DNA of 63,965 bases, filler included, from Octopus bimaculoides (lineage: Eukaryota), in the NCBI RefSeq assembly GCF_001194135.2. It is 9 parts of 9 records of this genome, joined end to end, with 100 filler letters (N's around TTAATTAATTAA, not from the genome) between each part and the next. Parts side by side here need not be neighbours in the genome. Positions count along the whole stretch, not along the records: positions 6,779 to 15,355 come from NC_068984.1; 8 more parts are not named here. One strand, written 5' to 3'. Positions 5,767 to 22,488 of this stretch are shown here, one piece after another. The notes below the pieces were generated by a model. The model was not told where the DNA came from. It saw only the letters and a list, made by a program, of their open reading frames with translations, and did no database searches. Made by a program: the position numbers and the translations under genes. Positions within the stretch are counted from its first letter, which is position 1. Every line of letters begins with the position of its first letter.

Positions 5767-6678
5767 GACATATATATATACATATACGCACACACATTTA
5801 TAGGAGTTTATGCGTGTACACATACGTGCGTCCGCATGTGCGTGTGTATGCGTATCCTGGAGTGAGACTTGTTTCACAAGTGACACCATCTGAAGAGCTA
5901 TTTAAACAGAAACATAATATCGTGGAAATATCTTGATGGTTATTTAAAATAGACATCATATAGCTTTATGCCTTTGTATGGCCTTTTGTGTTAACGTTTG
6001 ACACTTGTGTGAATAGCAACAAAAATTTAAATGGAAGTAAATATACGGTTATAAATATGTATGAGGTTTAATTGGCACCTGTGCGTGTTTCGCGATATAA
6101 TTGCAGTATGTATATATACACATTTATTGGACAGGTGCAACAGCGGTTTCCGGAAGCTTTGGATCCAGGGACTTTCCAGACCACGAATGGCTACCATGCT
6201 CAACTCTTTCTAAATCAAACAAATATTAAATTTAATGATATAATCAAATGAAATACATGTACCTGTACATTAGTATATACGACACAAGTTTATGATTAAC
6301 ATACTGTACAGGTTACTAATCTGAGTAAAGTAGCGCTAAACTAGTTTGGCGGTCTTGAGAATTTCAAGTTCCCGCGCATAAATTCGTACGGATTGTAAGA
6401 GACTCCGGGCAATCACTGTCCGGAAAGTTAGTGTAGCATTTGTAAATATGTGATGGTGGGGAGTGGGGAAGTGAACAGGGGGATAAATAGATATAAATAT
6501 ATCAGTGTATATATTCTATTATTCTTAATTGGCAACAATTAAAACATGGCCATGGCCCGCGGTCCGAGAGTTTAGGTTTGATAAATGCCATACACGGAAC
6601 TGTCAACCTTTGAGCCGATTATAAACAATTATGTGTACCCGTGCGTATATATCTGTAGTTATATATATATATATATAT

Positions 6679-6778
6679 NNNNNNNNNNNNNNNNNNNNNN
6701 NNNNNNNNNNNNNNNNNNNNNNTTAATTAATTAANNNNNNNNNNNNNNNNNNNNNNNNNNNNNNNNNNNNNNNNNNNN
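6679..6778. other. Synthetic 100-bp scaffold spacer N44-TTAATTAATTAA-N44; the 12-mer also lies at 15400, 20705, 22949, 24780, 43112, 59483 and 62828
   Basis: Identical palindromic 12-mer with stops in all six frames, always centred in N runs; an assembly artefact. Confidence 0.95.
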
Positions 6779-7028
6779 TGGCTTGTGCGGGTGGCACATA
6801 AAAGACACCATTTCGAGCGTGGCCGTTTTCGTGCGGGTGACACGTAAAAGCACCCACTACACTCTCTGAGTGGTTGGCGTTAGGAAGGGCATCCAGCTGT
6901 AGAAACTCTGCCAAATCGGACTGGAGCCTGGTGTTGCCATCCGGTTTCACCAGTCCTCAGTCAAATCGTCCAACCCATGCTAGCATGGAAAGCGGACGTT
7001 AAACGATGATGATGATGATGATGATGAT
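6779..7028 (+). mobile_element. RTE-type 3' UTR and tail
   Basis: gagtggttggcgttaggaagggcatccagctgtagaaac...ccaacccatgctagcatggaaagcggacgttaaac(gat)n. Related tails lie at 16553 (-), 14385 (-), about 10040-10139 (+) and 62884 (+). Confidence 0.7.
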
Positions 7029-7094
7029 ATATATATATATATATTCTACTATACCTATCCCTGTAGACCAACAAACCAACAAGTGTGTCTTTCT

Positions 7095-7295
7095 CTATGT
7101 GATCTTCTGACTAGCTAGAAATAGCAGTTAAATCACACCCTGCTGTCTTAAAAGAGAAAAGACACATCAGACGACAATGTAGTTCTTGATGTACTGTGTC
7201 TGAAAAGAAGACTGGATACTTATGGCTGTAACACATTGGATCATAAGTTCATTAAATAAATGCTAACCTGGGCTAAACTGCAGCGATGACAATAA
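7095..7295. repeat. Interspersed repeat family D (unclassified); other copies near 10300-10460, 11975-12025, 26850-26895, 30420-30610, 32785-32920 and 46860-47040
   Basis: Recurrent block (g)ctagaaatagcagc/ttaaat..gtcttaaaa..ggtcat/cggctggaat..ctttgatcatagg..gggctaaac. Confidence 0.55.
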
Positions 7296-7746
7296 CTACA
7301 ACAAGAACACTGCTGTTGAATGGAAGTATTATCCCAGAAGGTCATGTCTGTAACGTGTATTCAATTCACTGTGGAGTCCTGTCTCTTAGCTTATTTCTCA
7401 TGCTTTTTGTTATGGCTGAGATGATTGACACCTTTCACAATGTCCTCTCCATAATACCTAGAATTAGGAGAAATACCTAGAATGTGGTACAAGCAAAACA
7501 AGTGGAGAGTGCTTCAGGAGAAATTTTTTTCTCATAAAATCATTCATTTGCATTACATATCCATAGCATTTTTGTCATCAGACCTGTATATACCAACCAA
7601 TATTTCTAATCTTTTATCTTGATTCAGACATTGGAGTGCAGCCATGCTGGGGCTTGAAGTATTTGGTCAAACAAACCAACCCCGTTTTTAGAAATAATAC
7701 ATTTTCTAAACCTCTCAGAGAGATTTATGCAGGAGTGATACGATGA

Positions 7747-8044
7747 AGTAGTTGTATGCTGTCAACTTAATGTGACAGTCCCCTGATGGGAATAATACTA
7801 CTCTTGGTTAGACCTAAGAAGCTGCACCACTTCCTGTTGGCCTTGACACATTTCCTATGTCCTTATGTTTACAAGGGGGAGACAAGCTTAGCTGGGTGGA
7901 GGTGCTTGTCTCCCCCTCGTAAACATAAGGACATAGGAAATGTGTCAAGGCCAACAGGAAGTGGTGCAGCTTCTTAGGTCTTACCAACAGTAGTATTATT
8001 CCCATCAGGGGACTGTCACATTAAGTTGACAGCATACAACTACT
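7747..8044. repeat. Near-perfect fold-back (inverted repeat), MITE-like
   Basis: Arms 7747-7887 and 7904-8044 are 141 bp each with 3 mismatches and a 16-nt loop. This also explains the mirror ORFs 7786-7977 (+) and 7814-8005 (-). Confidence 0.95.
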
Positions 8045-8109
8045 AAATCAATCCCCATACTCAATTTTTAAGTCCTACTTGATGTATATATATGTATATA
8101 CATACATCA

Positions 8110-8245
8110 ATCCTTGTCTACCAAATCCACTTACAAGGCTTTGGTCTGGAGCTATATCAGGAGACAGTTACCAAAGGTGTTCCACAGTGGAACTGAACCC
8201 AAAACTGAATGGTTGGGAAGCAAGCTTCTTAACCACACCTCTGCC
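8110..8245 (-). mobile_element. SINE family A, 5' half
   Basis: ctaccaaatccac..ccaaaggtgttccacagtggaactgaaccc..accacac. Confidence 0.7.
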
Positions 8246-8421
8246 TTATCTCAAATGTAAAACAGAAATCTTTAAAAATCCCATCAAACCATCAGAGATA
8301 CCTGCAGACAACAACTCATATAAATCATCTTTTGATTAGTAACATAGTTTGTTACTAACAAAGACTATGCTTGCACTTTACAAGATTTTTACCACTGACC
8401 TATCGGTTATTGACCCCTTGC

Positions 8422-8595
8422 CATTGTTTCCCAACATATGATCTTCAAAGATAACCAGAAGGGTTCTTGAGCTGAATTCAAAATTTGTTCAGTAGACAAA
8501 CCATTTAAAAGCTTGTTGGGGAAAGTGGGAGGCCTTCAGAAAATTTCTTTAAATAAAAGGGGGCTCTTGGTAGTGAAACGGTTGGAAACCATTGT
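8422..8595. mobile_element. Degenerate hAT-like MITE
   Basis: Termini cattgtttcccaac ... gttggaaaccattg are inverted at 11/14. The 8-bp flanks ccccttgc and tcctatgc match at 5/8. Confidence 0.4.
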
Positions 8596-8659
8596 CCTAT
8601 GCTTTTAGTGAATTAGACCATTGCATACTCAAGTTTATCCTTCATGACTACCTCTCCTC

Positions 8660-9040
8660 TGTGAAGGCGCAATGGCCAAGTGGTTGGGGGAGCAGACTCG
8701 CAGTTGTAGGATTGTGGTTTCGATTCTCAGACTGGACGTTGTAAGAGTTTATTGAGCGAAAACACCTAAAGCTCCACGAGGTTCTGGCAGGGGGTGGTGG
8801 CAAACCTTGCTGTACTCTTTCACCACAACTTTCTCTCACTCTTACTTCCTGTTTCTGTTGTGCCTATATTTCAAAGGGCCAACCTTGTCACACACTGTCA
8901 TGCTGAATTTCCCCAAGAACTATGTTAAGGGTACACGTGTCTGTGGAGTGCTCAGCCACTTGCACGTCAATTTCATGAGCAAGCTGTTCTGTTGATCAGA
9001 TCAACTGGAACCCTCATTGTCATAACCAACAGAGTGCCAC
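8660..9040 (+). mobile_element. tRNA-derived SINE, family C (my label)
   Basis: Head gaaggcgcaatggccaagtggtt (A box) and gtttcgattctc (B-box-like), followed by a GC-richer body. A related head lies at 51425-51530 (-). Confidence 0.6.
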
Positions 9041-9149
9041 GACCTCTCCTTTTTTTGTCACTCTTCTAGGTTCTTTACAAACCACTTTTTACCCAATATT
9101 TTTTCATTAGACAGTTGACCTGGAATTTCTCTACTTCTCATACTTTTGT

Positions 9150-9390
9150 TAGCCATGTTGTGAAGAAGGTTCAGTGTCTTCTACCATAGCCCATGACTTG
9201 TGAGTCAATTTGGTTGACACGTGTTGGTTTGTTTACATCCCAGTAACTCAACAGTTTGGCATAACACATTGATAGAATAAATATCAAGCTAAAAATAAGG
9301 CATGTACTGGGGTTAATTTGTTTCTTTAAACCCTTCAAGGTGGTGCCCATCATAGCCACTGTCTAATGGCTGAAACAAGTAAAAGATCGG
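9150..9390 (+). mobile_element. Degenerate SINE family A
   Basis: gtgtcttctaccatagc..tgtttacatcccagtaact..gatagaataa..ggctgaaacaagtaaaaga. Confidence 0.6.
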
Positions 9391-9604
9391 AAAATATCAA
9401 ATGAACTTCAATTATGTAAATCTCATTAGTCTTTGAGGGCTTGAAAAGGCCAGAGATACAAGTCCTTCCTCTTGGCTAAACAATGGAAAACAAGGAAACA
9501 AAACATAGTACCCTTTCCAACAGTAATTATGCTACCCAAGTAACAGAACTAATCTTATAATTTCATAACAGAATAATTAAAATAATCAATGACTAACAAG
9601 ATAG

Positions 9605-9718
9605 TAAGCTGGCAGAATCATTAGCACACGGGGCGAAATGCTTAGTGGTATTTTGTCTGCTGTTATGTTCTGAGTTAAAATTCTGCCGAGGTTGACTTTG
9701 CCTTTCATCCTTTTGGGG
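9605..9718 (+). mobile_element. SINE family B, 5' part
   Basis: agctggcagaatcattagcac..gttgactttgcctttcatcc. Confidence 0.75.
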
Positions 9719-9759
9719 CCACCCTTACAGCCAGGAACTTTTCAGCACCCCCTCATATA

Positions 9760-10139
9760 TAAGGCTGTGTTATTAAGAAGTTTGCTTCCCAACCACGTGG
9801 TCTTCAGTTCAGTTCCATTATCTTCAACTATAGCCCACGGCTGACAAAAACCTCGTGAGTGGATTTGGTAGACGGAAACTGAAGGAAACCCACCCTATGT
9901 GCATGTATGTGTTGTCCAGAGATCCAGTGATTGTTGTAAGCGAACATCATCGTCATACGAGCGAGCTTATTTGCTTCCAATTTTCCGTGAACAATGTGTC
10001 TGGTGAAGGGGGAATATTACCTTGTTTGGAAACAGGAGAAAGTTGATGACAGTAAGGACATCCCGCTATAGAAAATCTGCTTCAATAAATTCCGTTTGAA
10101 GCCATGCAAGCACGAAAAAGTAATTGTTAGATGGTGATG
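9760..10139 (+). mobile_element. SINE with family-A head and RTE-type 3' tail
   Basis: Head ggctgtgt..gcttcccaaccac..gttcagttcc and gtggatttggtagacggaaactg, then aaggacatcccgctatagaaaatctgc..ccatgcaagcacgaaaa..gatggtgatg. Confidence 0.6.
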
Positions 10140-10883
10140 TATTTATAGAAATGTTTCCAACTGACAGTCAGTCACAGCTGAAGGTACTTTATTTTATTTA
10201 TGCTTTTCAAGGAATGAACGTCATCCATTCAGCATAATTAAAGAAATCAATAAGTTGTGATTAACAAAGAAAAAAAGATTTATATACCGATATTGCTCAG
10301 AGATATTATTTCTTTTCCGCCAAATCGACCCCAAATACCACTCTACTGTCTTAAAATAAAAGAATACACTGACAAGTAAATAGATGGAATGGTCACAACT
10401 GGAATACCTTTGATAGAATAATCTATTGAAACGGGGCTGACTTAGGGTTAAACACCTAACTTTATCTAATATTCATTCTTTCTCTTTTTTTTTTTTTTGG
10501 AATAAGATAAAAACTATTTCTAAAAATAACTTAACAGAGTACTGTTATTTGTGTAAAGTTATTTTTAGTACAATTGTGATAATGTTGATTTCTCTCATCG
10601 CCGCTGGTTCCAATATTATTATAGAAAACGTGATTTTAAGTGATAAATTCTAGAGAGTATAAGGTTCATTTCCGTCTAAACGAGACATGGCACAGATGCG
10701 GACGGAGAGGCGATGCGGGTGACTGAGATAAAGAAGACTGGCAAATTATCAACACAATTATCTGTTGTTAAGTTATTCAGGTCAATTTTCGCTACATCTA
10801 CTTAATCTGGCAATCCTCCGCGCATCATCATAACGAAAAGCAGTCGACAGACATAAACAAACCGAAAGAAATCTGAACGCAAA

Positions 10884-11153
10884 ATGGTTGGCACTTATAC
10901 AGTTGCAGCTATATCAGGGAGTTGCGGATTTCTACTTGGAGGTACTCTTTATGGATATTATTTATGTTGTAAAGCACATAGGAAGAAAAATGTCTACGAA
11001 ACACCAAAGTTAGTCGACGAGTATATGTATCTTCATTACGGATCTCCTCAGGCTTCCACCCATGCTGACTGGTATAATAACTTTCAAATTAGAGATGGAT
11101 TCGATTTCCCTCTTCGATGTGCCATATTCTGTGATAAGTACTGCCCCAAAGAG
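10884..11153 (+). CDS. Exon 1 of a stand-alone SAM-dependent methyltransferase similar to the OvoA C-terminal (mercaptohistidine methyltransferase-like) domain, with an N-terminal signal-anchor
   Basis: ATG at 10884 follows an in-frame TAA at 10854. The 90 codons read MVGTYTVAAISGSCGFLLGGTLYGYYLCCKAHRKKNVYETPKLVDEYMYLHYG...FDFPLRCA...CPKE and end at a strong donor GAG|gtgagt (11154), phase 0. NVYET..LV.EY...HYG and FP..CA match my recollection of the start of the OvoA methyltransferase domain. Confidence 0.85.
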
Positions 11154-12109
11154 GTGAGTTCTCATCATCAATTGTATATAATTCCTGTATTATGTATTCT
11201 TTATTAGTAAACGTATTTTCATTTTCCTTCACTACTCAATCCTGTGTTCGACCGTCAGGTAACATTATATTTCATACTTAAAAGTTGTATCGATTTGTGC
11301 AGCTTCCTTCGTGTATTTATACATTTCCCCCCCTTTCCCTAGATTTCATTTAGGTTTTGTATGTATTTTCCTTTCCTTTAGCTGTCCCATCCGAAGTAAA
11401 ATATATATATCACTTGCACCCAAATGTCATACCTTAATTTCTTACACCTCAACGTGCCACGTTCCGGGTTCGCCTTCTTTTCTCATTAACCTTGAAAGAC
11501 TACCAACACTACTAGTTGAAGCTTCTATGTGGTCGCTTCGATCTTCTAGTATTAACAAGAAGGAAATAGTAAAATTCAAACCTATAAACAATATTCAGCA
11601 CACCTACATAAGTGCACTCCCACAACGACTTTATTTCCTCAAAATTTTCATGAAAATGGATATTTTTAAATGGAATTTTCTGCAAATACTTTTTCAAATA
11701 GATTCTGGTTATATCTGAATCTGTTGTGAAAAACTTTGTTTTGGCAAACGATTTAAAAAATGTCAGGAAAACTCAAACTAAAAAGCATGGAACAAAATTC
11801 AGGGCACCGACTTCGAATTTGTTACATTCTTCAGAAAATTAAAAACGTCGTAAAAGTTGCCCCATCTCAGCATGAAACGTCCTTAAATACTCCCCCAATC
11901 ACAACAAATCATGACACATTTCAGCTTGCAGGGTCTTATTGCTACAAAAATACTCTCCTAACACGCTACGAGGTAGCTTTCTAGAAATGACAGCCAAATC
12001 TCCCTCAAATCATACTCCACTATTGGCCGATGTAGTGTCCGATGTTAAATATGGTTGTTGACATCATAAGAAAGTATAAACTTCAAGAGAAGGTGAAATA
12101 ATTTTTTCG

Positions 12110-12510
12110 AAACGGTGCATCTCTAAACGAATAAAGCTATGAATAACAGTGTGTAAATATTAAGTCAACTTTTCTATCCAAAGGGTTTTAATCAATATTT
12201 AGAAATTTTGGTAAATTTTCAGATTAACACCCGCACGATTTTCACTAGGGTGTTAGGGTTTTGGGGTCAGGGTTACGGTTTTAGGGTTAGGGTTAGGGAA
12301 TTCCGTCCCTAACCGTAACCCTAACCCTTAGACTCTAACCCTCACCCTAAAACCCTAACACAGTAGTCACTACTGTGTTAGGGTTTTAGGGTGAGGGTTA
12401 GAGTCTAAGTAACACCCACACGATTGTCACAATCGTGTGGGTGTTAATCTGAAAATTTACCGAAGTTTTTTTTTCATTTATAGCTTTATTTGCTTCGAGA
12501 TGCACCATTT
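12110..12510. repeat. Nested-palindrome element containing TTAGGG/CCCTAA-like arrays, in intron 1
   Basis: Outer IRs 12110-12143/12473-12510 and 12210-12240/12431-12461. Internal perfect palindromes 12327-12409 and 12410-12446. Telomere-like arrays at 12246-12298 (G-rich) and 12307-12359 (C-rich). Confidence 0.9.
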
Positions 12511-12818
12511 AAAAAAAAAAAGTAAAAAATCATGGTCAAGCTGAAACACTTGATCGAGGCTAATCTGGGGGTAAATAGCAACTAAACAATGCCAGCGTCT
12601 AAACACAAAATACAGAGCCAAAGCTGCTAATGTTGTTACATAACTTAATACCACCATCAAAAAGAAAGAAAATCATGCCTCAATATATAATATTAACTGT
12701 CTAAAATAATATATATATATATATATATAATTTTTGGTTAATGTAGTTTAGTGTCACGAAAAATTTTAAGTAAATTGCACCAGAAATGATTATGTGAAGT
12801 CCCATAATTTCATAAATA

Positions 12819-13474
12819 TCGAGTCATCCCATAAATAATGTGGTTTTTTTCAATTACATGAACTAAAAGTCATAGGGAGACGAGATAAACTACCTGCATT
12901 AGCTTGCTATAAAAGCAGGTAGTAATTTTATTTTGTACTTATTCTTTGTGCAAGTTTTGAAGAGTGCAGTTCCCTATAAAATTGTCAAGCTCTGAAGACA
13001 GTGGGTAGGGAAAGGAGAAATACTGGCACCCCAGGCTAAAGAAGACCTTCACTCACGTAAGGTGTTGTTGTTGTTTCTTTGGTTTCAAGACGAAAGGTGT
13101 TCTTCCATCAGCATAATGCTTGGCCACATGCAGCAAGGATGACATTCCAAAGGCTGGAGCAGTTTGAATGTGAAATGATGCCCCACCCACCGTATTCACT
13201 GGACATTGCCTTATCTAATTATCATTTATTCCACATCTTCAAAATCATTTGAACAGAAAAAAATATGAATTCTGTAGACAAGGTCAGAACAATACTGGAG
13301 AAGTATTTTTCATCACAGACAAATGAATTTTGGAAGAGGGGCCTTGCAAGTCTACCAGTAGATGGAAGAGTATTGTAGAAAACGAAGGAGAGTATACTTT
13401 AAATTAAAAAAGATCTTAATTTTGAAAAATAAAAGAAGTATAAAAAAAACCGCATTATTTATAGGATGACACAA
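12819..13474 (+). mobile_element. Internally deleted mariner (DD34D-type) element in intron 1
   Basis: TA-flanked imperfect TIRs (tcgagtcatcccataaataatg ... cattatttataggatgacacaa). From 13094 it translates as KVFFHQHNAWPHAARMTFQRLEQFECEMMPHPPYSLDIALSNYHLF, a decayed HDNARPH and YSPDLAPSD motif pair. Confidence 0.85.
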
Positions 13475-13869
13475 TACATGCATTGAAGATATCACCTGGG
13501 TATGTGACATAAAGAAAATTGGATGTTTGGTGCTGTAGAAAATGGGTACAGGAAAATGTGGCATGCTTACACAAGTGTGCTAGAAAATTTCATTGAAAAT
13601 TATCCATTTCTCTCAAAGTTATGAGGAAAGAAATTTGAGAAGAGAAGCATGTGGTTGATACCCAATAGGTAGGCTTCCTATGTTGGTTTAGGCTGCACAC
13701 ATGGTTGTAAACTATTCTTTAAATTTTGTTGATCCAATGATAAGAGCATCCATTCTCTGACTATTGAGGGGTGGTGGAAACTTGCCAAGAAGATACTCAG
13801 TTGACAATTACCTGTTTGCATCACTAAACCTATATGTATACATGTATAAATTTTGTGTCTATTCTTCAG

Positions 13870-14091
13870 CCGCGATCTACAGAAGCTCGGCGAGCTTTAG
13901 ATATTGGATGTGCAGTTGGAAGGTCAACATTTGAACTGTCACAATATTTTGAGGAAGTTATAGGAATTGACTACAGCCAAGCATTCATCAACCAATGCCT
14001 TTTATTGAAAGAGAAGAAAACATTAGATTTTTCGATTGTCAGTGAAGGAGACATTTATGAAAAACACACAACTACATTATCGAGTTCTGTG
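13870..14091 (+). CDS. Exon 2 of the same methyltransferase (SAM-binding motifs)
   Basis: Acceptor tctattcttcag|CCG, donor GTG|gtaagt, 222 nt, phase 0 at both ends and in frame with exon 1. Encodes RALDIGCAVGRSTFELSQYFEEVIGIDYSQAFI (class I MTase motif I and the acidic motif II) and SEGDI. Confidence 0.9.
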
Positions 14092-14384
14092 GTAAGTCTT
14101 CTCTAATTTTAAGCTCAAATTATTTCATTTAAACTATAATTAGTTGAGAAATCTTTGGGATCTTTTTCCATTTGATATATTTGTTTTGATTCTATTGGAA
14201 ATTCTTCAGATGTAGTTTTCCAACTGAATTATGAAAATCAAAACTATATTTTTGAAGCAATTAATAACATGAATAATATGAAGATTGAAACATTGAAATT
14301 TTTTGTAATTTTAGCCAATAAGATTCATCCACATTTTACACAATATGATGATATATTGTTTTATTTTTGTTTGTTTCCACCACC

Positions 14385-14520
14385 ATCATCATCATTTTAT
14401 GTTCATATCCGATGCTGGCATGACTTGAATGGTTTGGTAGGATCTGGTAAGCCCCAAGGCTAGGCTGAGCTCCAGTGTCAGCTCTAGTATGTTTTGTATG
14501 GCTGGATGTCCTTCTTAGTA
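14385..14520 (-). mobile_element. Degenerate RTE-type 3' tail
   Basis: (ATC)n then gatgctggcatgacttgaatggtttgg...ggctggatgtccttc, the reverse complement of the 6779-type tail. Confidence 0.5.
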
Positions 14521-14990
14521 TCAACCAATTTATAGTCTGTACTGGATTGTTTTTTTTTTTGTGTCACTTGCACTATTAGGGTTGCCACATGTTGCAAGAC
14601 AGGAAAAGAACAGAAAAGGCAAGAGGCCCCTAAGTGGTGGAGTGGGGAGTATTTGGGAGGGAAAGATGATTTTATGCCAGTTGTTGAGTGGCTAGAGTAT
14701 GAAATAGGAATGTACATGTATGTGTTATTATAGAGGAGATATATAGCTACCTCACATAAGGGTGTTTTGTTTTATGAAAACCAAAACAATTTTATATTTT
14801 TTGTAAAATTAATAATAAATATGTTACAAAACCTCTAAATATGAAAATATTTAATGAAAGACAAATTAATATGTACAATGAAATTTTATGAAGCACTGTG
14901 AACACTAACTCCCACGATGCTGTGGTAACTTATTTGAAGAAGAAATTATTGATGAATTTAATTGGCTTAAATCACAGAAATTTCAATCTG

Positions 14991-15204
14991 TAACCCTTTA
15001 GTATTCATATGACTCTGTCAAATGTAATGCTTATTTATTCATATTGTATTGAATTGCATTATCTCATAGCTTTCAGATTTCTAGGATGTGAATGTTTATT
15101 ATTAGAATGACATTGTAGGATAGGTGTGAGAGACCAAATCTGGCCAGTTTGAACATAAAACAGGTCAAATATTCAGGCTGCATATGGCCAGTTTAAATGC
15201 TAAA
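14991..15204. mobile_element. Short MITE-like element
   Basis: Starts taaccctttagtatt and ends aatgctaaa (partial inverted terminus). Recognised partly from memory of similar octopus repeats. Confidence 0.4.
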
Positions 15205-15696
15205 ATTAAAAATTTTGTAACTTTATTTTCATTAATTTCTTTAAGAAATAGTTGAAATTTTCGTAATTAGCTTGAAAACTACATCTATGTAGAAATTTTC
15301 CATAACATTAGAATGAATGTATCAAACCAAAAAGATCCATTGTGTATTGTATTTTNNNNNNNNNNNNNNNNNNNNNNNNNNNNNNNNNNNNNNNNNNNNT
15401 TAATTAATTAANNNNNNNNNNNNNNNNNNNNNNNNNNNNNNNNNNNNNNNNNNNNTATATCAAAAAGATGTATCACAATACTATATATATATATATATAT
15501 ATATGGGCACACACTTAATCTACAACTGCGAATCCAACAGAATATACTCTGATGGATTCAAACTTATGAACTGAATGTTCGAACACACATATTCCTGTCT
15601 GTGACTTTTTTATTCTGATTTCGATGATCATTTTTCTATGAACAATTATACAGACATACATGTATATGTATATTTATGTATGCATGTATACATATA

Positions 15697-16552: not shown

Positions 16553-17150
16553 ATCATCATCCAGTATCATAATCATCAGTGTCTGTTTTCCACGCATCCA
16601 TAGGTTGGACAGTTTGACAGGAGCTGGCATGCCACAGAGCTGCCCAGGCTCTTTTGTCTGTTGTGACATGGTTTCTACAGCTTGATGCCCTTCCTCACAA
16701 TTACTACTTTACAGAGTGTTCTGGCTTTCCTCATGGGACACTAGCATAGCTGTTTTTTACATGGCAGCAGCATGACTGCTTCCAAATGCTTTCTATGTGG
16801 CTCCAGCATTAGTGCTTCTTGTGTTGTGCTGGTGTGAGTGGGCTACATGTAGCACTGGCACGAGTGCATTTTACATGGAAGAGGTTCACTTTTATACTGT
16901 GCCAGCACAGGCCATAAATGACTTAACTGTATGCATGCGTGGCCACACTTTTACTTAGTTTGTGTCATGTCTTTTCAAGCACAGCAAATTGCCATGTCTT
17001 GGTCCTTCGTCATCTCTTCAGTGAGGCCCAATATCTGAAGATCCCTTTACACCACCTCATTCCACGTTTACCTGGGTTTACTCCTTCCACAGGTTCCCAC
17101 CACAATTAAAGATCTACAATGCTTTATGCAGTTGTACTCATCTATCTGCA
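16553..17150 (-). mobile_element. 5'-truncated RTE LINE 3' end (ORF C-terminus, 3' UTR, (GAT)n tail)
   Basis: Reverse complement encodes CIKHCRSLIVVGTCGRSKPR.TWNEVV.RDLQILGLTEEMTKDQD, a decayed GRGRPRKTW motif. It is followed by the aggaagggcatc..ccaacctatgg..(GAT)n tail also seen at 6779-7028. Confidence 0.75.
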
Positions 17151-18799
17151 TATATGCATTGATATTATACATACACATACATAAATACATAAATGTATAA
17201 ATACACGCACACATACACCCAAAATATTTCAGTGCTATAAATTATCATTCAAAAAAGCTAGAAATCAATACATTTATCTCATGAATCAATACCTTTATGG
17301 CCAACGCAACAGATTGTCACAATTACAATCATGAACATCAATATTATCATTGTTATTATTATTTCGATGTTTATAACTAAAATCAATACTACCAAACATT
17401 TGGCATTCTCCATTATCTCTATGATCATTTAAACAAGTGTAACATCATACAGTCTCTCTCTTTCTTCCTCTTTTACATTTATTCTCCAAAGGAAAATTGA
17501 AAGTAATGATTTCTTTTTTTTATTTTCTTTACTGTCTTTGAAGCAACAAGAAATCCTATCCTTTAAAAACAGTCTGGAAAAAATTGGTTTCAAAGATGAT
17601 GATGATGATAATGATGATAATATTGATAATAATGATGTTGTTAATGATGGCTCCATAGAAAGAATACCGTCACTGAAGTTAATTGGTCTGTATGCGAAGA
17701 ACAGAAACCCACTGTTCCTTTAATGGCAACAGACATAAAGAGTTGAGTTCTTTTGCAATAAATATTTAAATGTTTACATTTAAAATATGGCTTTTGGCCA
17801 AGAAATTCTTTATTTATTTTGAATTTTTGCTTGAAGCAATGAAGAGTTGATTTTTTAAAATATTTCTTATAGTTAATGTTTTCTTTGTTTAGATTTTATT
17901 TTCTTTCCACAGAAGTAGCTTAATATATGTAACAAATTTTTGCGTTTTGATTCTACATGTCTTAATCTTTGATTTTTTTTTCAAAAGACTAAAGCACAGG
18001 TGCAGCTGAAGTAATCAATATATATTTAAATATCAATGAAATAAAGTGTGTGGTAATATAAAAGACCTAACAGTATTTGAATAGTGCAGATAAATTATAT
18101 TATATTCATTCATGAGTTAAAATAGATTTTGTGTCAAAGGCTACATCTTATGCACAAAATCTTTTTGTGAATTGTCCATATTATTTTAGGATACAAAAGA
18201 AAACACATTGTAGAGTTTCTCAGTTGAACTGTTGAGATTAAAGAAGTTTTGTACTTAAATAAGGCTTTTGTTTTTTTTTTGTTTTTGTAAGTTAAACAAA
18301 ATATTTTTTCTATTAGTAGATACTGCAGTAAACAGGAGCATCAATCTCATTTTATAAGACAGTCTATAAATAATTTTATATTTCACTGATTTCTTTGTCA
18401 TAGTTGATTTGTAATTAGAGACGTTTTGAAATAAATATTTCATCTACATGAGGAACCTTTTGTGAAATTTGTACAAGACATTACTTTGATACATCAATAG
18501 ACAATAATGTTACAGTTCTTTTATAAAAATTGTATAAATTCTTCATAATTTTCAAATTTAGTTCAAACCAGATATTTTATTTTCTAATGTAGTATCAAAG
18601 TAAATAATGTAGATGCCATGTCTCATAATCCATTAGCTTATAGAACAACTGAAGACTTAAATAAGTTGCTGTTATTGTTTGAAACTTAATCTGACATCCA
18701 GGTTAATACCATTAGTTCGCCTTTGCATGCCACTAGCAGAATTCACTCTGTTGCAAGGATTCAAGTTAGGAGTCCCAGCATTTAGCCCACAATTTCATG

Positions 18800-19036: not shown

Positions 19037-21186
19037 CAAGAGTTTGGATTAGGTGGTGGTGGTGGTTTTGGCAGTGATTACAATAGCATTACTGGTTACA
19101 GATTTATGAAGTGTCAGTCACTACTTTGCCACAGATTTGGATGTGAGGGTGACAATGAAGTGTCTGTCTGTAAGTCTGTGTATTGCAAGAGGCTTCATCT
19201 GACTAAGTTATTTGTTTTAATATCACTTACATCCTGTATTGATATACATCGGTGCAAAAAGTGTTTCATACTGTTAGGTGAATCAGAATAGCATCAATTA
19301 TTCAAACGCGTTATTGCTACACAAAAATTTGCTTGAGGACTAAATCTCTCGTGGACACTCTGCTTTGAATAAATTATATTGTGTTATATAATAATACATA
19401 TGTGTGAGTATGTTTGCGTCTGAGACAATCACAAACAATTTCTGTCTTCCAAATTCCAGCTTACATGGTGTTGGACATACTCTGCCTACCATTAAAGACA
19501 TTCAACGGTAATACACAACCATGGAATTAATCCAAAACCAAACATTTACACAGTAAGCTTTTTAATCTAACAGACATGCAGGCCCCTCGAATCAGTTTAC
19601 TTAGATTAAAAATAGATAAAATAGTAGTAATGTTACAGTTCCAAATATAATTGGCAAATCTGCATAATCTTGAAACCAATTCAATAAACCTTCCAAAGAA
19701 AACCATGTAGTTAATCCCTGAATTCAGTTTGATAAAGTGCTTTAACACCAAACTCAAAGTCAATGAATCACTCTTGCAGCACAATTGGCTCTTAAAACGT
19801 TTAGTAGACTCTGCTTTAGGCACTAAGTTCTCTTTTTTTTTCTCTCTCTCTCTCCTCCTCCTCTCCCTCTCAATCTCTCTCTTGTTTAGATGCAGCAGAT
19901 TCTACAATAAAAACAGGACACCCAAGAATAAACAGAACACTAATCAGTTACCTATTTCAACACTGTATATACTCTGATAGCAAAATACAAACCAACCTAT
20001 AACAATTTCTGCTACTACTGCTGCTACTACTACTACAGAAGTAATATTGATACAGCATAACTGCAAAGTTTTACATCCATATTGCAATTGTTAAAGCTAA
20101 GAAGAGGCTTTTAACTGTCATAAAAATTGACAAGAATATATCAGAAACTAGAGAAACAACTGGACTTTTCTAGTAAAAAATAAAAATGAGAATTAAAAGA
20201 TAAACTAATGGCTATGTATTGGTTAATAACTGAATACCAGACTTAACAAATGGTCTAAATATTTTGACATTTATTTAAGTATATAGAATGGTAAAGTTAA
20301 AAAAATCTGCCATGTTTGTATTCCAGTATCCTAAGTCGACATGTCATAAAGCTTGAATAAGTTTTTGTTGTAAAGATTGTATTGTAGTCACATGCTTACT
20401 GTTGTAATGTTAATAAATACCTAATGGAACGTAGCATAGTGTTTAGAACTTGACATTTCCAAAGTTGATAGCAAGGAGCAGTAAGTTTAAAAAATATTCT
20501 ACCAAAATGTAACTGTTTCGGTTGTGCAATCTATTATTAGAACTACAGTTGATATAATGAATGGCATTATCAATACAGTGTGTACTGTAGCAATACAGTG
20601 TATATTGTGTGTGTGTGTGTGTGTGTGTTTGTGAATGTGTATTCTTATTTATATATATATNNNNNNNNNNNNNNNNNNNNNNNNNNNNNNNNNNNNNNNN
20701 NNNNTTAATTAATTAANNNNNNNNNNNNNNNNNNNNNNNNNNNNNNNNNNNNNNNNNNNNCACACACACACACATACACACACACACAGATACAGATAGA
20801 TAAATATACCGACTGACTGACATATAGATACATACATATATACATACATACGGACAGACAGACAGACAAACGTAGGTACGTGCATACATACACACATGCA
20901 TACATACATACATACATATCATATAATCAAGACTTTGTCCTTTACTTCTGTGGCAATTATGACATTATCTCAAACCCCCTGTTACCCTGTTATTTATAGT
21001 GCAGATGTTACAAAGTTAATACAAGGCTTTTAGAATAAGGGGTCTCTTCGGACATCGGCCATAAATCGCTATAAATATTTGAACGATTGTTTTTTTTTTT
21101 AAACCGACCAATTAAATTAAATTGCACAGTCTCGCTAATTGTTATTCTTTTTTCTTCTTGTTCCTTTCTTAACTTTATTGCAGCTG

Positions 21187-21256
21187 TTGTTGTTGTTGTT
21201 GTTGTTCTTCTTCTTCTTCTTCTTCTTCTTCTTCTTCTTCTTCTTCTTCTTCTTCC
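21187..21256. repeat. (GTT)n-(CTT)n microsatellite
   Basis: Directly visible. Confidence 0.95.
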
Positions 21257-21651
21257 TTTTCCTCTTCCTTCGCTTCTCTCCTCCTTCTACTTCCCCTAAC
21301 CCCGCTTTCCTCCTCCCTCTCCTCCTACACGTCTCCCTCCTCCCTTGTCTTTCCCTTCTTTCCTTGCTTCCTTCCTTTTCTTTTTCTTTTTCGTCTTCTT
21401 CATTCAATTGCTCAGCATCAGCATCGCATTACCACCACCTCCACCATCACTCCCACGACCACTACCACCATCATCATCATCACTATTAGTGTAGGACAAT
21501 GTGAAGAGGGCACTTTGCCCTAGGTGGTCAGGGTGACCGTGGGTTTTATGGGGACTGCATGAACAGCCTTAGGAAGTTTCCTATTTAGGGGGAATTAATC
21601 GTTCTTACCTGGGTAGATATAGCCTTTTGTAAAGTTGTACAGTAGCAGGTC

Positions 21652-21902: not shown

Positions 21903-22329
21903 ATATATAGATATATATATTATTTTGTTTAAAAGAGTTCCAACACTGTCTGTTTTTTATGTTTTATTTATATTCCTGCAAAACCAATGTGGGATATAGA
22001 ATATGGAATATACAATATATAATATAATATACAATATATAATATAAAATAAAAATGGATGGTACTATGAAATAAAGTATTGAATGTCTTATTGAATATAT
22101 ACGTACATGTATGTACATACCTACATCAACATCTATATATAGATGCATATCTGGGTACAGGACGTAGCAAAAAAAAAACGTGGACAAAATGATAAACGGA
22201 ATACAGAAAACACACAGGCCACATAGAGAACATTTCCTTCATCAGCTGCCACCATTCTAAAACTAAGCGTTTCGAAGAGTTAAGGCAGGACGCATTGTTA
22301 GAATGGCTCTTCCCACGGACCAATGCGAC

Positions 22330-22488
22330 CGGTTTCTTTCAGTTTCTGTCAACCAAATTCATTCACAAGACTTTTGTTAGCACATGACTATAATAGATAG
22401 AGAACACTTGCCCAAGGTGCCACGCAGTGGGAGTGAACCTAGAACCATGTGGTTAGGAAGTAAACTCCTTACCACACAGTCACGCCTG
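22330..22488 (-). mobile_element. SINE family A, 5' half
   Basis: acacttgcccaaggtgccacgcagtgggagtgaacc..accacacagtcacgcc. Confidence 0.8.

Follow-up and report, generated by a model that had tools for sequence, protein, structure and literature searches.

The window analysed here is a stretch of 63,965 nucleotides (nt) of Octopus bimaculoides DNA (assembly GCF_001194135.2), in which positions 6779–15355 (NC_068984.1) carry the first part of LOC106880151, a gene for a predicted membrane-anchored methyltransferase of the ovothiol family. This piece is eukaryotic DNA of 26–43% G+C and is identical to O. bimaculoides CM046604.1 (GCA_001194135.2) over 8577/8577 bases (100%; positions 5896–14472 of the stored locus record, L002), where runs of N flank it on either side. 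Two coding exons, both in phase 0 and on the plus strand, were found in it, and are coding exons 1 and 2 of LOC106880151. Exon 1 (10884..11153; 270 nt, 90 codons) runs from an ATG at 10884 to a GTGAGT donor and was read from the sequence and recovered by tblastn with proteins P0096 and P0094. Exon 2 (13870..14091; 222 nt, 74 codons), also recovered by tblastn, lies between a ...tattcttcAG acceptor and a GTAAGT donor. They encode residues 1–90 and 91–164 of XP_014785470 (P0096/P0099, 'uncharacterized protein LOC106880151'), and the joined peptide of 164 amino acids (aa) is identical to this part of the RefSeq protein. Translation of the 90 nt upstream revealed an in-frame TAA stop (10854..10856, +), 30 nt before the ATG.

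Exon 1 codes for the predicted anchor and the N-terminal motifs of the family. Residues 2–29 (VGTYTVAAISGSCGFLLGGTLYGYYLCC; 10887..10970, +) form a hydrophobic segment, predicted from Kyte-Doolittle values and the AlphaFold model of an orthologue to be a signal-anchor helix, and the basic cluster KAHRKK, a positive-inside determinant seen in the translation, comes directly after it (10971..10988, +); the motifs NVYET, LHYG and FPLRCA follow. Exon 2 is the start of a Rossmann-type core. It includes motif I, ALDIGCAVGRSTFEL (13894..13938, +), the glycine-rich loop for S-adenosylmethionine (SAM) and a signature of the family, which aligns to ALDLGCAVGRSSFEL of OvsM, ALDVGCAIGRSTLEL of OvoA_Th2 and ALDLGCATGRASFEL of OvoM, three bacterial enzymes of solved structure; in alignment A1, the loop's G and C do not vary. 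Motif II, VIGIDYS (13957..13977, +), carries the acidic residue ending strand beta-2, an Asp (D125 in P0094 numbering) that is also invariant in A1. In class I methyltransferases an acidic residue at the end of beta-2 is the usual ribose contact. The exon structure and upstream stop had been described in a first-pass annotation of the sequence, as had the hydrophobic segment, the basic cluster and each of these motifs; all were confirmed, and the set of motifs is far beyond chance.

The window encodes the first 164 of about 300 residues, and full-length tests were made with the O. sinensis orthologue P0094 (XP_029635865, 301 aa), which is 96% identical to the window peptide, a value taken from the O. 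vulgaris protein P0001, which is nearly the same in sequence. Intron 2 starts at the GTAAGT donor (14092..15355, +), and tblastn detected no further coding exon between 14092 and the end of the piece at 15355. The third exon of O. bimaculoides is found at L002 15996–16214, past the run of N that closes the piece. The O. sinensis gene has four coding exons (L003 ~10001–10270, 18433–18657, 21127–21340 and 22283–22486), and the fourth exon of O. bimaculoides, expected about 0.9 kb after the third as in O. sinensis, probably falls in the run of N that covers this spot in the stored record (L002 17285–19998). Because the position of exon 4 is covered in this way, the RefSeq model XP_014785470 has only 263 aa and an artefactual end: it reads on into intron 3 (L002 16215–16295) and closes with a hydrophobic artefact. 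That O. bimaculoides has lost the last exon was rejected as an explanation, since the expected position of this exon is covered by N. O. vulgaris P0001 is annotated with the same intron-3 read-through isoform.

The octopus gene is independent of OvoA, the enzyme in which a methyltransferase domain of this type is fused to a sulfoxide synthase. Searches by tblastn with cephalopod OvoA queries found no sulfoxide-synthase (OvoA N-domain) exons in the piece, including within 4 kb, and no sulfoxide-synthase coding sequence in the 10 kb that precede the start codon, in O. bimaculoides and O. sinensis alike; what they returned were weak matches to the methyltransferase exons alone, and the octopus methyltransferase has no DinB-like or FGE-sulfatase domain on the same polypeptide. 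The sulfoxide synthase of the same genome is encoded by LOC106877452 (P0387), on another chromosome-scale contig (97.8 Mb, versus 147.8 Mb for the contig with the methyltransferase), and OvoAs also occur in O. vulgaris (P0388) and Argonauta (P0389), where they score 589–600 bits on model TIGR04344 (cut-off 400). A genomic in-frame stop alone cannot exclude an upstream spliced exon in eukaryotes, and the two exons of the window could in principle be the 3' part of a longer OvoA-type transcript whose apparent start is an annotation artefact. The stretch upstream that is free of sulfoxide-synthase-like sequence in two Octopus species and the position of OvoA on another contig both speak against this, as do the gene models of two RefSeq (O. 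bimaculoides, O. sinensis) and two GenBank (O. vulgaris, Argonauta) cephalopods and of more than 40 other animals (~295–300 aa), which start with the same anchor. Transcript evidence points the same way: a 996-nt contig assembled from run SRR8281687 (L001), which at 64% identity to Octopus is probably from another cephalopod, is intronless and has a complete orthologous open reading frame (ORF) of 295 aa with the same MVGTY... start, behind a 96-nt 5' untranslated region with stops in frame. No splicing of upstream sulfoxide-synthase exons was seen, and a hidden OvoA transcript can practically be discounted. The first-pass annotation had proposed a separate gene with a reading frame that starts at the methyltransferase, and had suggested a check for a separate, full-length ovoA in the genome; the former is supported, and an OvoA gene does lie elsewhere in the genome.

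The best NCBIfam model for the window peptide is TIGR04345 ('putative 4-mercaptohistidine N1-methyltransferase', ovoA_Cterm), with an E-value (E) of 1.7e-26, compared with 2e-5 for the next model. TIGR04345 is an equivalog-domain model of 242 positions with a curated cut-off of 170 bits. The 164 aa of the window score 93.3 bits over profile positions 1–108, as expected for 45% of the domain, and P0094 scores 236.3 bits over positions 1–242/242, above the cut-off. Generic methyltransferase models all remain below 30 bits with P0094, so the choice between the OvoA C-terminal model and a generic Methyltransf model, proposed as a check by the first-pass annotation, falls clearly on the former. The window peptide matches the solved structures of OvsM, OvoA and OvoM at E 3e-17 to 2e-13, and P0094 finds the same three by sequence and nothing else beneath 1e-5. 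An AlphaFold model built on 40 orthologues (mean predicted local distance difference test score 90.8) has an N-terminal helix at residues 3–32, then a Rossmann-type domain. Its top 11 Foldseek matches are to OvoM, OvoA_Th2 and OvsM (E 1e-29 to 8e-28), with target template-modelling (TM) scores of 0.90–0.94 for the stand-alone enzymes (OvoM: E 1.2e-29, TM 0.94, root-mean-square deviation 1.9 Å), and the first match outside the ovothiol family, CARNMT1 (E 3e-9), is separated from them by 20 orders of magnitude. The octopus protein keeps 54/75 positions that are identical in OvsM, OvoA_Th2 and OvoM, and 60/68 of those conserved in 15 bacterial and protist members (27/33 within the part encoded in the window). 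These comparisons of sequence and modelled structure show it to be a member of the TIGR04345 family at the equivalog level, with the predicted fold of that family.

OvoM of Sulfuricurvum sp. (PDB 9bxl, 9bxm, 9bxn) is a stand-alone 5-thiohistidine N-methyltransferase, a discrete enzyme with the same fold, which the octopus protein matches over its full length (171.7 bits, 39% identity). Common to both are the motifs NxYE, xHYG/QYG, ALDxGCAxGR, GDACNL, NLIxRL, SPYTW, WxGG and IRETxRKxQ. OvoM differs in being bacterial and soluble and in having no N-terminal anchor, and it reportedly accompanies an OvoA without a methyltransferase domain, whereas the octopus gene co-exists with an OvoA that keeps a divergent C-domain. 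The bacterial OvoA C-domains (Erwinia tasmaniensis; Hydrogenimonas thermophila OvoA_Th2, PDB 8khq) fall under the same TIGR04345 model, and OvoA_Th2 matches residues 75–295 of the octopus protein (173.1 bits, 41% identity), but in these enzymes the methyltransferase sits behind a fused DinB/FGE sulfoxide synthase, where it makes up the dimer core of a bifunctional enzyme. The best sequence match among solved structures is OvsM (PDB 9bxh, 9bxj, 9bxk; 190.6 bits, 44% identity), a stand-alone 5-selenohistidine N-pi methyltransferase of the ovoselenol pathway (ovoselenol preprint, Kayrouz et al. 2024). OvsM works with the selenosugar-dependent OvsA and with senB/senC in gammaproteobacteria, and there is no sign of a selenium pathway in Octopus. 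Its lead in sequence score over OvoM and OvoA is too small to indicate a preference between chalcogens, and a selenium (OvsM-like) role was rejected for this reason and because no selenosugar context is found.

A likeness to OvoM could also reflect ancestry only, with an acceptor unrelated to ovothiol, such as histidine dipeptides, another imidazole or thiol metabolite, or a membrane protein histidine. The next structural neighbours are indeed imidazole/small-molecule N-methyltransferases, CARNMT1 and NNMT; the best of them, the carnosine N-methyltransferase CARNMT1 (E 3.4e-9), also methylates an imidazole nitrogen. The predicted anchor is, moreover, an animal (holozoan) addition that has no bacterial counterpart, and NCBI names the protein only after a generic yeast methyltransferase, 'CRG1'. 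However, CARNMT1 belongs to another family (13% identity, TM ~0.5), and all matches other than OvoM, OvsM and OvoA (E 1e-29) have E-values of at least 3e-9. The score above a curated equivalog cut-off is a further argument against an unrelated acceptor, as is a distribution that follows that of OvoA, with bony vertebrates, insects and nematodes not among the listed matches. An acceptor from outside the ovothiol pathway is accordingly unlikely. The pipeline name 'CRG1', given to the O. sinensis and O. vulgaris orthologues, was rejected as informative: the common ground with the yeast protein is that of class I SAM methyltransferases with a Methyltransf_11-type Pfam match, a generic similarity from which the octopus protein is set apart by its 236 bits on TIGR04345.

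The N-terminal segment was compared across orthologues. Octopus residues 2–29 are uncharged, with a mean Kyte-Doolittle value of 1.34 over the best 19 residues (moderate hydrophobicity), and among the six residues that follow are three Lys, an Arg and a His. In most of the scored animal orthologues a corresponding segment is present (0.95–2.1 over 19 residues), rich in G, A, S and T and with aromatic residues at its end, and in most of them 2–6 Lys/Arg lie within the 12 residues past it, ahead of N(V/I)YE(T/S). An Ephydatia gene model, the N-terminus of which may be incomplete, departs from this pattern, and two echinoderm orthologues that were left unscored by the script have hydrophobic N-termini too. 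Bacterial and most protist relatives begin straight at N(V/I)YE(T/S); the anchor is also present in Creolimax. Because it is kept in animal orthologues and absent from bacterial and most protist relatives, the anchor noted in the first-pass annotation appears to be an old, conserved addition in the animal (holozoan) lineage. The catalytic domain should face the cytosol, given the positive-inside rule and the availability of SAM in that compartment. Moderate hydrophobicity and a basic C-terminal flank are the look of mitochondrial outer-membrane signal anchors, and the octopus segment would seem to resemble either these or signal anchors of the endoplasmic reticulum. In a diatom, OvoA has been localised to mitochondria.

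The C-terminal domains of animal OvoAs present a different picture. A search with an Octopus OvoA query, taken from an alignment in a paper supplement by optical character recognition, returned 120 animal-type OvoAs of ~700–800 aa (P0387–P0506), 106 of which have no Pfam methyltransferase match; among those that do have one are echinoids, a brittle star, Lingula, a single copy of the two in Trichoplax, and a rotifer. The two Trichoplax sp. H2 paralogues (P0440, P0450) lie on one contig, and one alone has Pfam-detectable motifs (ALDIGCGVGR). In nine animal OvoAs, Octopus included, the N-domains all pass the TIGR04344 cut-off (556–641 bits), and the C-domains score 48.9–111.4 bits on TIGR04345 (O. 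vulgaris 59.2, Argonauta 53.5, Paracentrotus 65.6), covering up to ~178/242 profile positions. On the same model, stand-alone proteins from four animals (Octopus, Nematostella, Patiria and a shark) reach 235–246 bits, much as a bacterial stand-alone protein (241 bits) and a protist fused OvoA (217 bits) do. Of the 68 positions conserved in bacteria and protists, stand-alone animal proteins keep 56–65 and OvoA C-domains 19–32, and the echinoid OvoA C-domain, with 21–22/60, is equally divergent.

Homology between the octopus protein and animal OvoA C-domains (O. bimaculoides LOC106877452, P. lividus) is distant (exon 2 is 42% identical to Argonauta OvoA residues 569–606, E 1e-5). Shared features are the glycine-rich loop, the acidic residue of beta-2 and an xTxW at the end; the OvoA domains lack NVYE/FHYG, FPxRCA, GDAC, N194, the 22-residue WLGG segment and RKxQW. 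Across the 18 OvoA C-domains examined, all have lost Y48, R79, GDAC, N194, L195, the 22-residue W237-G239-G240 segment and Q283-W284, and R198, G217 and W292 are retained along with the loop and the acidic residue. This pattern suggests that they probably still bind SAM, on an acceptor side that appears to have been rebuilt; the SAM-site residues of mussel OvoA have been described as 'less conserved' in a paper on that species. In a neighbour-joining tree, OvoA C-domains form one clade in 200/200 bootstraps, on a very long branch. Over a similar range of phyla, stand-alone animal proteins differ from one another by a mean distance of 0.69 and OvoA C-domains by 1.54, and the stand-alone proteins lie at a mean distance of 0.89 from bacterial and protist members and of 2.14 from OvoA C-domains. 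An exhaustive representative search gave 150 nearest relatives, among which the fused proteins checked are protist or bacterial (Bigelowiella, Cyanophora, gammaproteobacteria), and no fused animal protein could be identified among those checked. Judged by sequence, the octopus gene thus stands far closer to bacterial and protist enzymes with proven N-pi chemistry than it does to any animal OvoA C-domain, and it resembles the bacterial enzymes far more than the C-domain of the animal's own OvoA does. The first-pass description of a paralogue of the OvoA methyltransferase domain therefore holds as regards the family, with the qualification that kinship to the C-domain of Octopus OvoA is not close.

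One way to account for two such modules is that the stand-alone gene is a redundant or catalytically dead relic, and that all animal N-pi methylation is done by the OvoA C-domain. The accepted pathway in the literature does give the N-pi step to OvoA, and the glycine-rich loop and beta-2 acidic residue of its C-domain are still in place. A relic would not, however, be expected to evolve as slowly across phyla as the stand-alone orthologues do, nor to keep so many of the family-conserved positions; such a pattern is what strong purifying selection leaves behind in a working enzyme, and the relic is given very little probability.

An atypical animal 'OvoA' was encountered in the copepod Neocalanus flemingeri (transcript GFUD01011893, supplement of PMC8623360). 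The C-terminal 534 aa after its sulfoxide synthase match TIGR04345 along three stretches (210.9 bits); by eye these look like a pair of methyltransferase-like modules in tandem. The N-terminus encoded by the transcript looks, again by eye, like that of an OvoB-like pyridoxal phosphate (PLP) enzyme. Copepod OvoA transcripts were not taken as representative of animal OvoA.

The distribution of the stand-alone gene was taken from the best 120 matches to the full-length protein, and absences refer to that list. Orthologues of ~295–300 aa occur in molluscs (cephalopods, gastropods, bivalves and one chiton), annelids, a nemertean, a brachiopod, starfish, crinoids, a hemichordate, tunicates, amphioxus, lamprey, many sharks, a chimaera, anthozoan cnidarians, the placozoan Trichoplax and sponges, and nearly all are annotated as 'uncharacterized'; Creolimax, Euglena and green algae provide relatives among other eukaryotes. 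Teleosts, tetrapods, insects and nematodes are not represented in the best 120. Many genera are common to this list and that of the 120 animal OvoAs, which contains no bony vertebrates, and the literature reports OvoA to be absent from that group. Lineage-specific duplicates of the stand-alone gene were seen in Ptychodera (P0166/P0213) and Montipora (P0159/P0212), with P0221 as a further case. Ptychodera P0213 has an altered C-terminal motif, ending in HETTWEYNGGVSH in place of RETARKNQWTVSH, and P0221 has NVCET and NIGCAVG, yet scores 209.5 bits on TIGR04345.

The reading preferred here, to which we give a probability of roughly 0.6, is that the octopus protein is the animal counterpart of OvoM, and would convert 5-thiohistidine to ovothiol A by N-pi methylation on the cytosolic side of an organelle membrane. 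In this scheme the sulfoxide synthase, the separate OvoA, would couple cysteine to C5 of histidine, a beta-lyase would then free 5-thiohistidine, and the membrane-tethered enzyme would move the methyl group of SAM to the imidazole N-pi. In its predicted topology, an N-terminal signal-anchor helix and a basic cluster precede a cytosolic class I methyltransferase domain of the OvoM/OvoA-C-terminal type (~300 aa); the substrate, the regiochemistry, the orientation in the membrane and the identity of that membrane are all inferred. Canonical N-pi methylation is the parsimonious function because the nearest enzymes to the octopus protein are those of proven N-pi chemistry. A wider proposal, that in most animals the OvoA C-domain no longer carries the ancestral 5-thiohistidine pocket and the anchored enzyme is the main or only ovothiol N-pi methyltransferase, is put forward more tentatively and is on balance doubtful.

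The enzyme might instead be the missing alpha-amino methyltransferase that converts ovothiol A to ovothiols B and C, or methylate some other thiohistidine derivative. The enzyme for ovothiols B and C is unassigned (PMC12631010, PMC8623360), and with two methyltransferase-type modules in animals, the OvoA C-domain and the stand-alone gene, two reactions are conceivable. Methylation of a different atom ought to entail a reshaped pocket, however, and the octopus protein retains most of the positions conserved in bacteria and protists (60/68) and in the solved N-pi enzymes (54/75); the very wide distribution of the gene likewise disfavours this role, which is improbable, and distinctly so. The first-pass annotation had spoken of an unassigned thiohistidine/ovothiol methyltransferase: the thiohistidine family is upheld, and its suggestion of an alpha-amino activity, which found no positive support, gives way to the canonical N-pi reaction.

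Several points weigh against assigning the N-pi step to the stand-alone enzyme. Conservation of the substrate is argued from overall conservation only, and the animal members are known from their sequences. The octopus protein departs from all three solved bacterial enzymes, OvoM included, at two positions: a Cys replaces the Asp of NLI(C/D)RL, and the His of RKxQ(W/H) is a Trp. Both variants are common in the family. The OvoA C-domain may still bind SAM and carry out N-pi methylation, which would leave another role for the stand-alone gene. Finally, echinoid, holothurian and ophiuroid orthologues are not among the best 120 matches, though starfish and crinoids are present. If echinoids, which make much ovothiol, are truly without the gene, then N-pi methylation must be carried out in them by the divergent OvoA C-domain, and the stand-alone enzyme could be redundant or have another job. 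In echinoids and a brittle star, Pfam detects the motifs in OvoA and the list holds no stand-alone protein, and in most other animals the situation is reversed; this complementarity is suggestive only.

The rest of the piece contains several repeats. Intron 1 (11154..13869, +; 2716 nt, GT...AG) holds a telomere-like palindrome and a mariner remnant. The former, at 12203–12468, consists of nested palindromes of TTAGGG-like telomeric repeats and their complement, with a perfect 41-nt hairpin (12327–12367 / 12369–12409) inside 58-nt outer arms, and looks like a foldback element with interstitial telomere-type repeats. The latter, at ~13080–13400 (+), is a decayed mariner/Tc1-type transposase with stops and frame changes that matches Mos1 and SETMAR (E 7e-13). 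Upstream of the gene, 300 nt at 7747–8044 form a foldback that is 94% identical to its own reverse complement, with arms of ~150 nt and near-identical 63-aa ORFs on both strands (7786–7977, + and 7814–8005, -). At 8894–8989 (-), a peptide is 75% identical to the first 32 residues of an old O. bimaculoides OvoA model, Ocbimv22035077m (EINVQVAEHSTDTC...); the stretch is probably a dispersed repeat, mistaken for an exon when that model was built, and current OvoA models are without it. The first 235 bases of the piece (6779–7013) recur twice further downstream in the locus, at L002 20039–20273 (98.7%) and 17069–17284 (96.8%, inverted), each copy adjoining a run of N, as a dispersed repeat at assembly or masking boundaries.

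Papers on animal ovothiol (PMC8623360 among them) treat OvoA as a bifunctional enzyme that inserts sulfur and methylates the ring, an activity shown for bacterial OvoA only, and recent ones still give methylation to OvoA and name no methyltransferase for ovothiols B and C, describing it as unknown (PMC12631010, PMC8623360). The stand-alone enzymes OvoM and OvsM are already known and have been solved in bacteria. What appears to be new is the animal family, its conserved predicted anchor and its presence alongside an OvoA with a diverged fused domain, for none of which was a published description found in the literature searched. Animals from sponges to sharks carry this second, much better conserved and predicted membrane-tethered copy of the bacterial-type methyltransferase. 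If it is the stand-alone enzyme that methylates, the animal ovothiol pathway needs to be redrawn, and expression studies that use ovoA as the sole ovothiol marker miss a step. Were it the main or only N-pi methyltransferase, sulfur insertion and methylation would be uncoupled in animals, with the OvoA C-domain free for another role. Unmethylated 5-thiolhistidine has been reported in O. vulgaris eggs and in adenochrome (Rossi et al. 1985, as cited in later papers), and methylation by an enzyme that is separately expressed and separately located would allow methylated and unmethylated forms both to accumulate. The origin of the unmethylated 5-thiohistidine metabolites of cephalopods, and that of ovothiols B and C, can now be tested directly with two defined recombinant proteins.

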